DNA of 64,000 nt from Paraphysomonas bandaiensis (Eukaryota > Protista > Chrysophyceae): NCBI GenBank assembly GCA_965644295.1, contig CBFFRP010000028.1, positions 124,001-188,000 of the forward strand, read 5' to 3'. Shown piece by piece: positions 27,508 through 38,600 of the stretch. Both the position numbers and the translations under genes were made by a program. The notes under the pieces are model-generated. The model did not search any database, was not told the DNA's origin, and saw nothing but the letters and a program-made list of their open reading frames with translations. The first letter of the stretch is position 1. Each line of letters starts with the position of its first letter.

Positions 27508-29067
27508 ATGGCAACCCTTAAATACCATAAACCAGGCGAGTTAACAGTGATATCGATTCCTCAGTTCGATACAGAGCACTTTCCCTCATGCCCTAAAATA
27601 AACTATAGGAAACTACTGTCATCTCTGTTACCTCCCACTGACAGTGATGCTCCCGCTAAACCCGAATCAAGTAATACAGACTCCATCCCTTCAGGTGCTG
27701 AACCAGATCTAGTGAATGGAGTCAGTCCCGTGAGTAAGGCACGCGGTAAGCACTGTAATATAGTGGAGAGGCTGGAGAAGAAATACTTCGGGTCTGTGAC
27801 CGCAGAATCGGAAGAGAGTGACAGCATGTCTAGTGGGAATAATGTACCATCGGGTAAAGATATGAAGAAGAGGAAATTGAAATCATCCGCTCTAGACGAT
27901 TACGATTTAAATGACTCTTTCATTGACGATTCAGAGACTATAATTGCTGCCGAAAAGCGAATGAAGGTTAAGCGTACCAAAACGAAGCATGATGGATTTT
28001 TTGTGTCGTCCGGAGAACTGGAAGTCGTTTATAATAGTGAAGAAGTAGGTGGACCAGCGCCTGTAAAGTCCTGGGATCCACCGGAGGGATTAGTGGAAGC
28101 ACTTCAAGTGTTTAGAGCACAGGTACGGGAGCACTGTGGGCTAGATGAACACGAAGACCACCAGAAAATTCCACAAATTAAATACTTTCCTCGTGCACTC
28201 GACGAACATTTGTCTAAGGTAGATATTGTTGCTGCTGACGCGAGAATGGGGTCCGTTAGAAAGAACTCCCCGTATTTAGCAGCTTTGCGAGAGGCATTGG
28301 GGTCAGGCATATCTGATGGTGCACTCAAAACAGCGGTGCTCCGAATAAGGGCTCACAGAGCGGCTGTGGAGAGACATCTTCAACTCATGCAGCGTATTGA
28401 GGAGGTAGGCACCACCATTCGAAATAAAATAGTCGCTATGGAAACCGATGCAACTGCGGACTCAGCTCGTTACAGCGTAAAGTGGGATACATCGCTACGG
28501 GGTGATGTGTGTTCCGTAGAAGAGCTCTGTATGGATTGGGTGGCCGCTGAAAATGATCATAGAAGCCGTCTGCGGGCCTCGGACAAGAAGGAGATGTCCG
28601 AATCAGAAGTATGTTCTTTCTCAAACGATAATGTTTAACCTGTGCCATTGCCCGCAGACAATACAACTAAACGGAAATCGCGAACTCACGAAAGTACTGA
28701 AAAAAGTATCGGCAATAGCATTTGCTGCACCTTATTCCGATGACAATGTTGAGAAGGGTGGGCTTTCTGGTCTAAGAAAGGCTCTGACTACAGAAAAGGG
28801 GTAATGCGCTGAGCTAGTCGGTATTGAATTATTCACTTAATGCTATGATCATATAGGAGACGGAAAAGGAATAGTGTATCTGTAGCAAAGGAACGGAGCA
28901 AATCGTCTACGCAACCGCCTACACAACCGTCTACGCAACCGCCTACACAACCGTCTACGCAACCGCCTACGCAACCGTCTGAGGAACTAACGGTGACCAC
29001 TGAGCTGAATGTGGTTTCCGCTGTTGCACCTGGAGATGGTTCGCTTTCAACTTCAACAGATGGCTAA
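27508..29067 (+). CDS. HPC2/ubinuclein-like HIRA complex subunit
   Basis: NIVERLEKKY plus the HRD motif YDLNDSFIDDSE ... GFFVSSGELE. Introns 28609-28657 and 28801-28856. Confidence 0.82.
28904..28980 (+). repeat. Coding 12-bp repeat (STQP/PTQP) in the last exon of the HPC2-like gene
   Basis: Alternating TCTACGCAACCG and CCTAC(A/G)CAACCG units, about 6 copies. Confidence 0.9.
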
Positions 29068-30910: not shown

Positions 30911-30967
30911 GCGTACAAGCTGCATCGTTAATGCTCATCAGTCTGCTGTACCAGATGTCCACATGTA

Positions 30968-31657
30968 CATACATACATACATACATTCATACATACATAC
31001 ATACATACATACATTCATACATACATACATACATACATACATACATACATACATACATACATACATACATACATACATACATACATACATACATACATAC
31101 ATACATACATACATACATACATACATACATACATACATACATACATACATACATACATACATACATACATACATACATACATACATACATACATACATAC
31201 ATACATACATACATACATACATACATACATACATACATACATACATACATACATACATACATACATACATACATACATACATACATACATACATACATAC
31301 ATACATACATACATACATACATACATACATACATACATACATACATACATACATACATACATACATACATACATACATACATACATACATACATACATAC
31401 ATACATACATACATACATACATACATACATACATACATACATACATACATACATACATACATACATACATACATACATACATACATACATACATACATAC
31501 ATACATACATACATACATACATACATACATACATGCATACATACATACATACATACATACATACATACATACATACATACATACATACATACATACATAC
31601 ATACATACATACATACATACATACATACATACATACATACATACATACATACATACA
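30968..31657. repeat. (CATA)n microsatellite, about 690 bp
   Basis: Near-perfect array between divergent starts at about 30910 (-) and about 31770 (+). Confidence 0.99.
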
Positions 31658-31769
31658 CGTATATACGGTATACCGGATACTGTTACATGGCTGTATGAAG
31701 AGTATTCCACATCACCATCTTATTGAGTTCTCTAATGGGCATATTGATGCATGTACACGCATATCTGTC

Positions 31770-32462
31770 ATGCGGGACATTCAATCGCAGGTAGAGTCTG
31801 ACTTCGAAGAAGATGCAGCAGAACATGATAGTCACAGCCACACACCCATGATTAAGATGCTTGTGTCTGATGTGGTGGCGGGGGCTGTTATCGGCAAGGG
31901 GGGATCTGCTATACGAGATATGCAGAGCTCGAGTGGAGCACTGGTAAGAGTATCCCAGCCGCGTGACTACTATCCAGAGACCTCTGAGAGGACAGTAGTC
32001 TTGAGTGGGTCTGTAGATAGCATTCTTCAAGCCCAGAGGATCATATGGCAGAAGATAGCACAGGTAGACCCCCCACATACCCCTCTATGACGTTCATATG
32101 CCTTGTAGTTCAGCAAACCCAAGGATCGAGGACCTGTATGCGATGTGACGTATGTAGCAGGAAAGGTTCTGATTCCTAACGAGTGTGGGGGTCTGATTAT
32201 TGGTCGCGGAGGCTCCAGTATCCGAACTGTACAAGAGGAATATGCAGCAAGACTACATGTCACACCAAGCGATAGCGATGCGTCGCGCATCTCTCGAGAG
32301 CGTGTAGTTACTGTTACAGGATCGCTGGAGTCGTGTATTAAGGCATCGGGGTGGATAGCTATAAAGTTGGCGGAATCCTCTCATCTAAGCTATCGCAACC
32401 AGAGCACTTCTTATACTCGTATACAGTCATCTACATCCCGTATTGAGACTACGGATAAATGA
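31770..32462 (+). CDS. Two-KH-domain RNA-binding protein, Nova/BTR1-like
   Basis: KH1 AGAVIGKGGSAIRDMQSSSGALVRVSQPRDYYPETSER and KH2 CGGLIIGRGGSSIR. Intron 32064-32108. Confidence 0.88.
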
Positions 32463-33310: not shown

Positions 33311-33884
33311 TCGATCATGGATCATGAGCATGCGCATATATTGTCTGAACATTCACTCTGCTATCATGTCCAAAAACCGTATTAGTTGTCTGATGTAGTG
33401 TTAAATGAATTAACTAGTAAAAGAAACTGAAAATATATAACTCTGTAGTATATACATATGTCATTTTCTTCTCAGCTAGATGCGTCATCATTTTGCGTAA
33501 CATTCCAGCAATATGGAGTAATTCGTGGTGTAAAATTAAGCGCTACACAGCGTACCTTCTATTAATATGTAGACAACAAGGTTGCGATGATTGTGTTGAC
33601 ATTCTCGTTATGAAACAGTCAAAAAGCACACTCGACTCGACCTATAGCTTCGTTGTCAATTATTTTTCAATTTTTCTTACATACTACTTCCTCTTTTGCA
33701 GAGCAATAAGACAATAAAAACACGCCCCTAAATAACTTTGATTGTCTACTGACTGTCACTATATCACTAACTCGACAACTTACACTACGACGACCTACAC
33801 ATTCACCGCTATTGCAGAAACCGATTAAACAAACACATTTCACACGCCCTCTAGTTGAACTAAATTAATAGCTGCTATCGCGCA

Positions 33885-36800
33885 TCACTTCAAAACATTA
33901 AAACTACTCTTGGTTCCACTCTCACTGCAGAGGCACTACATACGAATAATTACATAAACCAAATCACACTCTAATACTTACTTTACTCAACGCAGCATCG
34001 TTCCAAGCCCGCATAAAGGTTCTGCAAAAAATCATAAGGATCAATTGAGAGTGAACAATAATAGGACTTACTTCTTGTTGACCCCTTCCACCGGAAAAAC
34101 CGGATTCTGAAGCTCCACTACTCGGAATAGTTCGTTGATTGATACAATGTCGGCAAGCAAGGCAGAACGATCAATATCCATGCCAAGAGCTTTTATAACT
34201 ATGTCGGGTGTAACTACACCGGTGCGATCTGCAACAGTCACAGTGAGACCAGGCAGATAAAAAATGAAGGTGACTCCGTACCAATATCCAAATATTCGAA
34301 TGCTTGTGAAGCTCTATCATCATCGATTGCCATCCTATGACCATGGGTGAGCGATTCACAATGCTATCAGGCCAACACAAACCTTTGGCATACAGCTGCC
34401 GCAATATACTCGTTATAGGTTATCTCGCGAAGCTGGGGCTTGGATGAAGGTGGTTGGGGTGGAATTAGGGATCCAGGTTGATCCGAGGCACAACATCCAG
34501 CTAGTTGACGAGGTGATGTGATAGCGTAAAATATCTCTTCCAGCTCCGCTAACTACGAAACACAGCTATTTCACCACTACAATTATACAGTAAGGGGGTT
34601 CAGGTACCTCGAAGGAGGTTCCAAGGGCTAGCATTTCATTAAGTGATATTGTTCCGCTATGATCATGATCGATTTCCAGAAACTCGGTACGATATGATGA
34701 TATCTGAGCACCTTTTACACATGGTAAACATATATGACGGAGCTTACCTGATCGGTGGTGAGTGTGTACGCAATTAACTCTAGCACCAACTTTGTCAGCG
34801 TCGGCAGTGATGAGAAGACTCGCAAACTATCGATTAATCACAAGAGCGCTCGATACATACATACAATATATCCCCACACCTTTTAACAATATCACCGGCG
34901 CTCGTTCGCAGATTTTCTGATAGTTGAATGCGTTTATTCTGTGGGGAAGGGAATGGAGGCATGCTCTGGCGGGACGTTGGACTAAAAGGCATGAGGGGGC
35001 CCGGACCATTGGACAACTGCCCAAGAATGAAAGGGTGCTGCAAGGCCTCGTCTGCTGTCATCCTACATAGCACATCAAACATTTACAATTCGTCAGCATA
35101 GTTACACACCGGAACTCTGGATTCTTAACCAGGAGGCGTCGCATGAAATCAAGGCCAATGTGAGACACGTGTCTGCGAGGCGAAAAATTAATAACCTATA
35201 ACCCATTAGCAACTTCTGCACTAACTTGAATCGTCGTTCAGGATACTCTGCTTCTTTCGTTAATGTACTATTGTGAATATCATCCGGAGTTTTGCCTGTG
35301 CGTCATCGTAAATAAAACATATAAACATCGGGTACGTACCAAAAAACGGTGGAGATCCTGAGAGTAACATGTAACATATCACCCCGAGTGACCAGAGGTC
35401 ACATCGATGATCGTAGTCCCCTTTAAGAACCTCAGGTGCGGTGTAATAGCACGATCCCACCCGCTGTCGCATGCGTTCAGTGCGGTCAAAATGCTTACTG
35501 AGACCAAAGTCGATTAGGATCAGCGGCGAGGACGAAGACTCCCCTTCGAACAAAAAGTTCTCCAGTTTCAAATCTCTGTACAACGAAAGGTTAGATGCGT
35601 GCTAGAAATTCAGTAAAGTATATTTACCTATGCACGATGCCCATCGAGTGAAGGTATTTTATGCTGCTTAACATATCCTTCATCAAGCGGGAGGCCCTGT
35701 CCTCACGGAACACGAATCCCTGACTCTTTCCTGAGGTGAGCATTTCGTAAAGTTCTCCGCCTCTGCATGATGCCCGTCAGATATAACTTCTACAAACACT
35801 TAGATATGTACGGCAACATAACTCACCGGCAGAGGTTTGTAACCAGATACACCGAGCGCCGCCCAAAGAACACATCCTGTAACTTTATGATATTAGGGTG
35901 GTCTACTTCTCGAAGAATGGCGATCTCAGTGTGTAATTTCCTGTGAATAAAGCACATGAGATTTCATTCGTACGCATCATCGCAGAAACATACTTTAGGT
36001 AGTAAGAAGTCACGCGGTCGACATTCATAACTTTCACCGCCCGTTCATCTCCGGTAACCCTGTGCGTAGCTAAGTAAACGGACCCGTAGCTACCTTTCCC
36101 TAGTTTATTTCGTCCGTGCACATTATAATACTCGGCACAAGAGGATCCCGAGAAATGCTCTCGAACAAAGTTTTGGGCTAGTGTGCTGGTCTCACGAACC
36201 TTTGCCGCTGCACAACATACACGAGTCGTTATTCATTAAAATATGAGCAGCATATTAACACCTGACACCCGGAGTTTATCATGAATCTCTGCATTCCTGT
36301 GAGGTAAGATAGATTCTAATACACGAAAGTACACGCTGGCTGCGTGGTAGTTTCTACTAGCATCCTCCCGCATCCCCTCTCTCAGCTGCTCGTCCGCAAA
36401 CTCCATGATCTCATTGGCCTAAATGATACCCGTAAAATGCTGTCACGAATACTTTAACTGTACCTCAGATATCAAGACATCCTCTGCATGCGTAACTACG
36501 ATTTTCAGCTTTGCAGAATTTTCGATTGCTGGGGTGAGGGCAGACTCAATCGCCAATTGACTTGAAAATTTGTCGCGGATAGTCTCGAAGAGAACCAAAC
36601 ACGACTGGGCACCTTCGTCAATATGAGTTTCAACAACCCTGTGTAGCTTCAAAAGAATTAATCACATGTTTGAAAGTGATACATATCCTCTATACCTTCA
36701 AAGCATGATTGATGGCACATATGACCACTCGTTTGTATCGATTCGACACCTCAGAAGAGTCGGTGGACTTCAAGTAGCCCCTATGCAGCATTTAAGTAGA

Positions 36801-36928
36801 CCCTCTCACTACCAGCCCACTTACCGTAAAGCCTTTTGAGCTTCTCCCAGGAACATTGATATGGGTCTAAGGGATGGTGGGATCTCCATCCCTACTCCAT
36901 TTACCACATCTGGATCATCCTCGCCCAT
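33885..36928 (-). CDS. Calcium-dependent protein kinase (CDPK-like) with an N-terminal Vta1/LIP5-like domain, many exons
   Basis: Kinase motifs LGKGSYG, AVK, DHPNIIKL, HRDLKLEN, DFG, GSCYYTAPE. Junction SLRVFSSLPTLTKLVLELIAYTL. EF-hand DHDHSGTISLNE. The N-terminal exons splice in frame from ATG 36928. The 3' end is approximate. Confidence 0.9.
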
Positions 36929-38600
36929 CTTGTGCTCTACTGATGTATATGTGTCTGATATATGTCTCTGTTATGCCATTGATATCTCCGATAACACGCT
37001 TGATGACTAACGGATCTAATAGAATCAACAGTTGCTTGGCTCGAGCTGCATGAATGTATCTGCTATGCTGAGACACAGTCTTCTATACGGTAATCTTTCT
37101 CCACGTACTCTCTATGTGCTAAACACACACAGTACCACACGACATACGATACTTTCTACCCAACCCTACAAAAAATATATGCTTTTTCATACTACAAAAT
37201 TACTTTTAAAATTAGGGATTTTCTAGCAATTTCAATTCACAAAATTAAAAATTTGCACCCTTTATACTACCCGGGTATTAAATATTTGGGGTAAAATAAT
37301 TGAAAAGTACGTCAAGGTTACGTACTTTGCAGTATATGCGAACTTCCTCGTGTCTTTTTTTATAGCCCATCAAAAAAGGGACTTTATAGCGCAAGAATAT
37401 ACTGTTTTTTTCAATGATTTCATCAGTTTGGTGTGGTGAAACACAGATACACAGATACACAGTATCTAGCTGACGACAGGCCCGCATATAGAGTGGAATG
37501 AATAGACTGCAATTGAACCGATAGTATCACCCAGCGGTAGAACAGTTCATTCAGAGGAATGGAATGAAAGAATCAAAGGAGGCTATCTGTTTGACTATCA
37601 TCTATCTCATGATTCATACTGTACCCGTGTACCTGTACCTGTGTACCTGTAGGTGCTGGCCCATGTTGTTCATATTATCTTTATTTGTTTCCTATAATTT
37701 ACAATTGTTCGTGTACATTTTCAGAGAGTTATTGAAGGAGGTCTACTGGATTAACTGCGGACGAAAGTAATACCATCCTAGTTATGCTTTTTATCAAAAA
37801 CCCGAATTTGTAATTTCATTGCGTTATCACTTAAGTAGTCTACCCTTATTCATAATAAGCTCCAGTACATGCAACATATAATGAGATAATGAGTCGCAGT
37901 GGGTTGGGGGAGATCAAATAAAATATACGATCACTACAGCAGTCACTGCCTAGAACCCCATAAGACGTATAGCATATCTTTATTAGATATCAGAGCCTGA
38001 TATATACTTTGCACAATTATCAGTACACATCAAGGGGTGGAAACAGTTACCGGCAGACCCATGTATAACGTGAGTTTAGGCAGACTATATCGAATATCGT
38101 AGTACCTATGTGCTATATTCATATATGCATTGTGCAGAGTACTTTAAAGCCTTCTGGAATATGGAATACATACTTCTGTATCTCTCTAAAACTTTAAGTG
38201 CTACGTTGTAATCCATTATGTATTCGCTGTTGCTCGGGTAAATGGACCGTTAGGACAACATATACGTACATGTCTTGTGTTTAAATGCGAAACTGAAATT
38301 GAATAGCAAGAGTATTTCGATTTCGATGTATGGGTCTGTCAGCTAAGCGGACAGAGTCACATACTGGTCCAAACAGATTTCGTATAGGAATGGAATTCAA
38401 CATATAATAAATGTCGAAAAGTTAGAATTACATAGCGAGCATCAATAGCAATCAAGCAGGGCAGCTCTTACCACGAATATGGCTAATTAAACGATACATC
38501 ATCGCGGAAAACACCTGCTCTCTATTCGAGACAGAATTAAATACTATAAACAAGAGTCAGTGCTAAACTAATATCCGCAGTGGAAACAACACATAAGGCG

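Follow-up and report, generated by a model that had tools for sequence, protein, structure and literature searches.

The closest described systems are the Vta1/LIP5 proteins, the calcium-dependent protein kinases (CDPKs) and the MIT-bearing kinases ULK1/Atg1 and ULK3. The tandem MIT of ULK1/Atg1 binds Atg13 rather than ESCRT-III. The MIT domains of human ULK1 and NRBF2 do not bind ESCRT-III (PMC9477494), so reuse of MIT domains for non-ESCRT-III partners does occur. In LIP5, MIT1 contacts MIM1 helices through M43, M47, M64, D65, L67, E68 and K71 (PMC6862464), and in yeast one substitution in this groove is enough to abolish the binding of Did2 (PMC5141497). The N-terminus of CDPKs is normally variable, and a survey of brown-algal CDPKs mentions neither Vta1 nor MIT domains (PMC12335766). 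An earlier note on the DNA studied here knew of no described fusion of a Vta1 N-domain to a CDPK; our literature search, with most subscription journals outside its coverage, likewise turned up no account of a CDPK fused to a Vta1 or MIT domain. The gene described below is such a fusion, a new architecture in the CDPK superfamily made from two known parts.

A confirmed fusion of a Vta1-type N-domain and a CDPK-type kinase

The window, by which we mean the whole 64-kb stretch of Paraphysomonas bandaiensis DNA that was analysed, carries the gene on its reverse strand. Its features are as follows.

33885..36928 (-), whole coding gene as defined by RNA: 18 exons that encode 729 aa and are separated by 17 GT-AG introns of 44-64 nt
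36929..37072 (-), 5′ UTR; the longest RNA contig starts at 37072, and two short ORFs lie upstream of the main ORF and in frame with it
36554..36886 (-), MIT1-like three-helix bundle, aa 15-94, exons 1-3
36488..36553 (-), variable linker joining MIT1 to MIT2, aa 95-116
36167..36487 (-), MIT2-like three-helix bundle, aa 117-190, exons 3-5
36122..36169 (-), family-specific conserved MIT2-kinase linker N-F-V-x-E-H-F-x-G-x-x-C-x-x-x-Y, aa 189-205
35026..36127 (-), Ser/Thr kinase domain with intact catalytic motifs, aa 204-466
34748..34896 (-), CDPK junction (autoinhibitory) helix region, aa 510-541, from homologue alignment with full CDPKs
34635..34670 (-), EF-hand 1 loop, canonical, D553-E564
34383..34552 (-), EF-hand 2 region, its loop split by an insertion of ~20-25 aa
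34072..34334 (-), EF-hand 3 (no position-12 Glu) and degenerate EF-hand 4

In the RNA-joined model the ATG lies at 36928 with an in-frame stop upstream of it, and the stop codon ends at 33885. The earlier note had proposed that four exons splice in frame into a kinase exon at 36207, and its coordinates agree with ours: exons 1-4 (36928-36825, 36780-36696, 36646-36464 and 36418-36262) are separated by GT-AG introns of 44, 49, 45 and 54 nt (the last of these leading to exon 5) and read without a stop into the exon at 36207. Only the end of the N-domain had to be moved, slightly further on to about aa 190 (36167). Both the 36261-36208 splice and the 36463-36419 splice are present in RNA contigs of four separate studies, and two single contigs, of 2560 nt (run X1) and 2392 nt (run X4), reach across the gene from its 5′ UTR into its 3′ UTR. 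These start at about 37070 and 37050, respectively, have an exon 1-exon 3 spacing equal to the exact length of exon 2, and continue across the kinase and EF-hand exons. The contigs derive from public runs and are uninformative on expression level and strand, but such full-span spliced RNA excludes that the N-domain is transcribed separately from the kinase. Exon 5 encodes the end of MIT2 (the last N-domain helix) together with the kinase glycine loop, so the domain junction falls within one exon. The fusion is real.

Some further details were noted along the transcript and beyond it. The upstream ORFs of the 5′ UTR have 2 and 8 codons (window 36973-37051) in the same frame as the main ORF. In the 3′ UTR the RNA contigs show strain-level differences at 33787 and 33879 (a 3-nt deletion and one substitution), and run X4 has a single coding substitution, at 35664. 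Elsewhere in the window, a (TACA)n microsatellite of ~700 nt (30938-31660) lies just upstream of exons at 31700-32460 that look KH-domain-like by eye, and a 376-aa ORF at 27508-28638 has the acidic stretch D-D-Y-D-L-N-D-S-F-I-D-D, which resembles the Hpc2/ubinuclein HRD motif.

The kinase motifs comprise the glycine loop (213-218), K235, E253, HRD (330-332), DFG (353-355) and APE, and the best PDB matches to the kinase and calcium-activation part of a homologue are full-length apicomplexan and plant CDPKs (E 6e-84). Judged by these motifs and matches, the kinase is of the CaMK group and, as the earlier note had proposed, of the CDPK type, with a junction helix and a calmodulin-like domain on the same chain. 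The note's description of the kinase as Ca2+-linked did not fare as well. Only one of the four EF loops in the window protein is canonical (EF1), since the EF2 loop is split, a disruption common to the whole window subclade, EF3 has no position-12 Glu and EF4 is degenerate. Calcium control is thus uncertain for the window protein, which from these loops is probably weakly Ca2+-sensitive or Ca2+-independent and more reliant on localisation. In the sister clade (the paralogue on contig C504, P0004, P0006, P0008 and P0119) two to four loops are near-canonical, and "calcium-dependent" as read from the loops fits the ancestry of the family better than it fits the window paralogue. A start of the form MGxxx[STC] is found in 11 of 33 complete N-termini, and many members of the window subclade have the MGxxxS myristoylation motif; the window protein begins M-G-E-D-D-P, with the Gly present and the motif not matched. 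At the gatekeeper position, codon 282 (window 35839-35841), the window subclade has Thr and the C504 group has Met, and a Thr gatekeeper may give a handle for bumped ATP-analogue kinase inhibitors.

A search of the genome (62.6 Mb, 669 contigs) identified two further intact genes of the same architecture, on contigs C19 and C504, making three in all. Contig C577 holds a decayed partial copy of the C504 MIT region at ~112.2-112.8 kb (L145:4733-5290), with stops and with no kinase within 7 kb. A separate canonical Vta1 with a VSL-type tail, a possibility raised in the earlier note, was found on contig C86. By eye, no intron positions appear to be shared by this gene and the fusion gene, which makes introns uninformative on the origin of the fusion. 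A profile built from pieces of the exons found 91 clusters (50% identity) that share the N-domain, and in every cluster that is long enough a kinase follows it directly. The named members (Chromulina, Mallomonas annulata and Mallomonas marina) are all chrysophytes, and of 30 clusters whose source was looked up none came from NCBI or UniRef, suggesting that the fusion is absent from the well-sequenced diatoms, brown algae and oomycetes. Divergent members sit on intron-poor contigs.

In the kinase tree all sampled MIT-bearing kinases fall on one side of a 98/97 branch, opposite nine other kinases of the genome. The window and C19 genes form part of a 99/97 subclade, and C504 groups, with weak support, with the homologues whose EF hands are better kept. 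The paralogue and outgroup rows were projected by BLAST and include some intron junk, and L159, L161, L164 and C319 were omitted. A single origin of the MIT-bearing CDPKs seems likely from this tree, which has few outgroups. A second Vta1-N fusion architecture was seen on two metagenome contigs (L029:110-1216 (+) and L102:3626-4780 (-)), where a Vta1 N-domain that scores as canonical (Pfam E 2e-35) is joined to a classical single MIT (PF04212, E 1.5e-22) that sits at the end of the ORF in place of the VSL tail.

Ancestry of the N-terminal domain

The N-terminal ~190 aa are best described as a predicted six-helix tandem MIT pair derived from Vta1/LIP5, an assignment for which the statistics are moderate and several directions agree. 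The earlier note had pointed to Pfam Vta1, and there the outcome is mixed: the family matches exon 4 of the window gene weakly (13.2 bits, E 0.089) and 9 of 38 homologues, with every match under the gathering cut-off (best 26.5 vs 26.8 bits, E 7e-6). All nine inspected stretches lie in MIT2, the better conserved half. Other Pfam families match at most two of the 38 homologues each, and the MIT family PF04212 matches none. Searches seeded with one Vta1 exon gave no matches, and the canonical comparison set was gathered by a motif scan; it consists of 22 Vta1 N-domains whose kinship to LIP5 was confirmed at E 1e-36. When the family profile was aligned to the Vta1 profile with hhalign, the match was colinear over 146 columns and both halves (E 1.1e-5, probability 82%), and MIT1 alone matched Vta1 MIT1 at E 8e-6 (probability 84%). 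The family profile also gave the genome's own Vta1 12.5 bits, against a maximum of 7.9 among the scored shuffles, and non-Vta1 ORFs with the same motif by chance had E >1. Motifs common to the family and Vta1 are an I-P-x-x-L-[RK] start, C-x-x-x-A in helix 2, A-[DE]-x-x-x-x-x-G and Y-x-x-W-[KR]. The Vta1_C (VSL) domain, through which Vta1 dimerises and binds Vps4, is absent: the window chain continues into the kinase and EF hands, and none was found in full-length homologues.

Structural models were made for homologues (Mallomonas annulata P0003 and M. marina P0119) and not for the window protein. The AlphaFold2 model of the homologue N-domain has six helices (pLDDT 88), and the top six Foldseek rows for it are LIP5 N-domain structures (probability 0.98-1.0, though with E of only 0.03-0.1), so that the tandem-MIT identity proposed in the earlier note is supported by fold as well as by profile. 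In the same model the second bundle reaches a structural Z of 11.0 with the calpain-7 MIT, 10.8 with an archaeal Vps4 MIT and 9.6 with LIP5 MIT2, and the first bundle a Z of 7.6 with yeast Vta1 MIT1 (rmsd 3.0, 69 residues). Any three-helix bundle could give such values, and the assignment to Vta1 therefore rests on the sequence evidence. The modelled angle between MIT1 and MIT2 is unlike that of LIP5 (TM 0.34; rmsd ~10, or 9.0 with 132 aligned), which is either real or a model error. Searches of ESM Atlas features and an Atlas fold search yielded no useful matches.

Two other explanations of the N-domain were weighed. One is that it is a generic MIT- or TPR-like pair of helical bundles that came to resemble Vta1 by convergence. 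This would be in keeping with a best Pfam score just short of the cut-off, with hhalign probabilities of just 82-84%, with calpain-7 and archaeal Vps4 Z-scores that exceed those of LIP5 in the range expected for helical bundles, and with a family-profile search of PDB sequences that did not find Vta1. Convergence would not readily give a colinear match that spans both halves, a score for the resident Vta1 above all scored shuffles while chance-motif ORFs fail, or specific motifs shared with Vta1, and it sits poorly with Vta1 being the sole Pfam family to match more than two members and with LIP5 heading the Foldseek list; we regard it as improbable. The other explanation is that the gene is an artefact of annotation or assembly, or else that a dead Vta1 copy was recently and neutrally fused to an adjacent kinase. 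Nothing was found in favour of this explanation, and we regard it as far more improbable still. It is refuted by the spliced single transcripts carried by independent studies, by the three intact paralogues and by the kinase that directly follows the N-domain in every long homologue. The MIT2/kinase junction inside one exon speaks against it too, as does selection: across MIT2 and the linker the window and C19 genes differ by a dN of 0.065 and a dS of ~2.4, indicating strong purifying selection. A Vta1-derived MIT pair remains the reading that we carry forward.

Binding surfaces and proposed mechanism

The earlier note had suggested that the MIT pair docks the kinase on ESCRT-III, and the residues do not support this as it was put. 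In helix 3 of the window protein, E84, R87, D88 and S91 stand at the likely positions of LIP5 M64, L67, E68 and K71, the mapping of this helix being uncertain. In the most likely register the fusion family has mostly R/K, R (96%), D/N and small residues at these four positions, where the 22 canonical Vta1s have L/M (100%), L (82%), E (95%) and K/R (100%), and of the MIM1-groove positions, all of them conserved across the 22 Vta1s, only M43 stays hydrophobic. A register scan, whose anchors came from the hhalign result and which is thus not independent of it, placed helices 1, 2, 4, 5 and 6 each best at the aligned Vta1 register, and helix 3 was negative against Vta1 in every register and ambiguous. 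The helix that forms the MIM1 groove thus appears, family-wide, to be the one without Vta1 character, with its exact residue mapping unsure.

In MIT2 the window protein has V175, A178 and K179 at LIP5 Y144, W147 and K148. Y144 is retained in 73% of the family and K/R148 in 81%, and at position 147 Trp, at 22%, is more frequent than any other residue. The W147 equivalent is absent from the window protein and both paralogues, and Y144 is absent from the window and C19 proteins as well, so that the window protein is without the Tyr/Trp pair. LIP5 W147 is needed for CHMP5 binding. The Y-x-x-W-K of Vta1 helix 6 is kept as Y-x-x-W-R in about a fifth of the members, which on alignment is good evidence of Vta1 ancestry. 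The Vta1-invariant residues D105, R106 and Y119 have given way in the family to other conserved residues (H 99%, R 89%, linker E/N 97-99%), and the residues fixed in the family are H149 (99%), R156 and the kinase-ward linker. Candidate partners are encoded in the genome, which has no fewer than six genes of the Snf7 family (on C408, C90, C380, C406, C255 and C421) and IST1 (on C441). Two of the Snf7-family genes (L008 on C408 and L013 on C90) end in MIM1-like helices of the form L-E-x-R-L-x-x-L-[KR].

The mechanism that we rank as the most likely, at roughly even chances of being right, is that a Vta1-derived head, packed on the kinase, targets and tunes it by means of a remodelled MIT surface that binds a partner other than a canonical MIM1. 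An ancestral CDPK of the chrysophyte lineage would have gained a duplicate of the Vta1 N-terminal MIT pair, and the original Vta1, with its Vps4-binding VSL tail, would have remained a separate gene. The pair may then have been remodelled into a folded module held on the kinase by the conserved N-F-V-x-E-H-F linker. The head would be both targeting and regulatory, an MIT groove gripping an amphipathic helix in a partner or substrate and docking the kinase there, and it has probably ceased to recognise the canonical MIM1 code of ESCRT-III; the window gene belongs to a subclade with partly decayed EF hands. An AlphaFold2 model of a homologue MIT pair plus kinase (465 aa, pTM 0.88) suggests a defined packing of the pair on the kinase, the pTM of a homologue being an indirect sign of it.

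Ranked second, and given somewhat less credence, is the reading in which the pair still docks on an ESCRT-III tail, most plausibly that of Vps60/CHMP5 through MIT2 or that of IST1 through a non-MIM1 groove. The kinase would then phosphorylate ESCRT-III or Vps4 cofactors in phagosome or MVB sorting, membrane repair or abscission, converging on ULK3, which provides a precedent (PMC4475061). The N-domain stems from a protein dedicated to binding ESCRT-III, one ESCRT-III tail or another is bound by most human MIT domains (PMC9477494), and Snf7-family and IST1 partners are available in the genome. MIT2, where all the inspected Pfam stretches fall, is the better conserved half, and it keeps Y144 and K/R148 in most members with W147 still the commonest residue at its site. 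The diverged MIM1-groove helix counts against ESCRT-III docking, as do the missing W147 equivalent in all three proteins of this genome and the missing Y144 in two of them. The remodelled-head mechanism has difficulties of its own, in that the register of helix 3 is ambiguous, several further grooves exist on MIT domains, and the members with Y-x-x-W-R fit continued Vps60/CHMP5-type binding there. A more ambitious proposal is that chrysophytes independently built a calcium-responsive ESCRT-III kinase from a Vta1 MIT pair and a CDPK, in parallel to ULK3 and the ALG-2 route. We consider this rather doubtful; the EF-intact clade, with the C504 paralogue, would fit it best.

Significance and comparison with known systems

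CDPK N-termini are regarded as variable leaders, and here a whole family has a conserved folded head of ESCRT derivation. The family is common in marine and freshwater metagenomes, labelled only "calcium-dependent protein kinase" or "hypothetical", and current Pfam annotation misses the head. If the head binds ESCRT-III, it would link Ca2+, a kinase and ESCRT directly in flagellates that are major bacterivores and mixotrophs, and if the calcium-responsive reading is true, Ca2+ signals would be wired directly to ESCRT-III phosphorylation in phagosome processing, membrane repair or cell division. If the head does not bind ESCRT-III, the family would show cleanly how an MIT pair was rewired in nature to serve a new partner, and the canonical Vta1 of the same cell would be the control.

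The Vta1/LIP5 N-domain (PF04652; PDB 4TXP/4TXR, 2LUH) likewise consists of two three-helix MIT bundles, ordered alike, with a colinear profile match and shared motifs in helices 1, 2, 4, 5 and 6. In contrast to Vta1/LIP5, the fusion has a kinase attached and no VSL (Vta1_C) tail, hence no Vps4 activation; its inter-MIT linker is longer and variable, its MIM1-groove helix has diverged, Vta1-invariant residues are replaced, the family scores under the Pfam cut-off and the modelled inter-MIT angle deviates. With no VSL, a score below cut-off and a changed groove, the fusion is not to be filed as Vta1. CDPKs (apicomplexan CDPK1/2/3, plant CPKs and brown-algal CDPKs) share with it a kinase, junction and calmodulin-like domain on one chain and a frequent MGxxxS start, whereas its N-terminus is a conserved folded domain of 190 aa. 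The CDPK-related kinases with decayed EF hands resemble the window subclade, in which EF2 is disrupted.

Like the fusion, ULK3 is a Ser/Thr kinase joined to a tandem MIT pair (PMC4475061), but its MITs are C-terminal rather than N-terminal, its kinase is of the ULK rather than the CDPK family, EF hands are found in the fusion only, and ESCRT-III binding is proven for ULK3 and putative for the fusion. With a CDPK-type kinase and N-terminal MITs, the fusion is not to be filed as ULK3 either. The tandem MIT of ULK1/Atg1 (PDB 4P1N, 8SOI), which comes next after LIP5 in Foldseek, is also kinase-linked and sets a precedent for an MIT pair that serves a non-ESCRT partner; it differs in kinase family and domain order, and its likeness to the fusion is structural.
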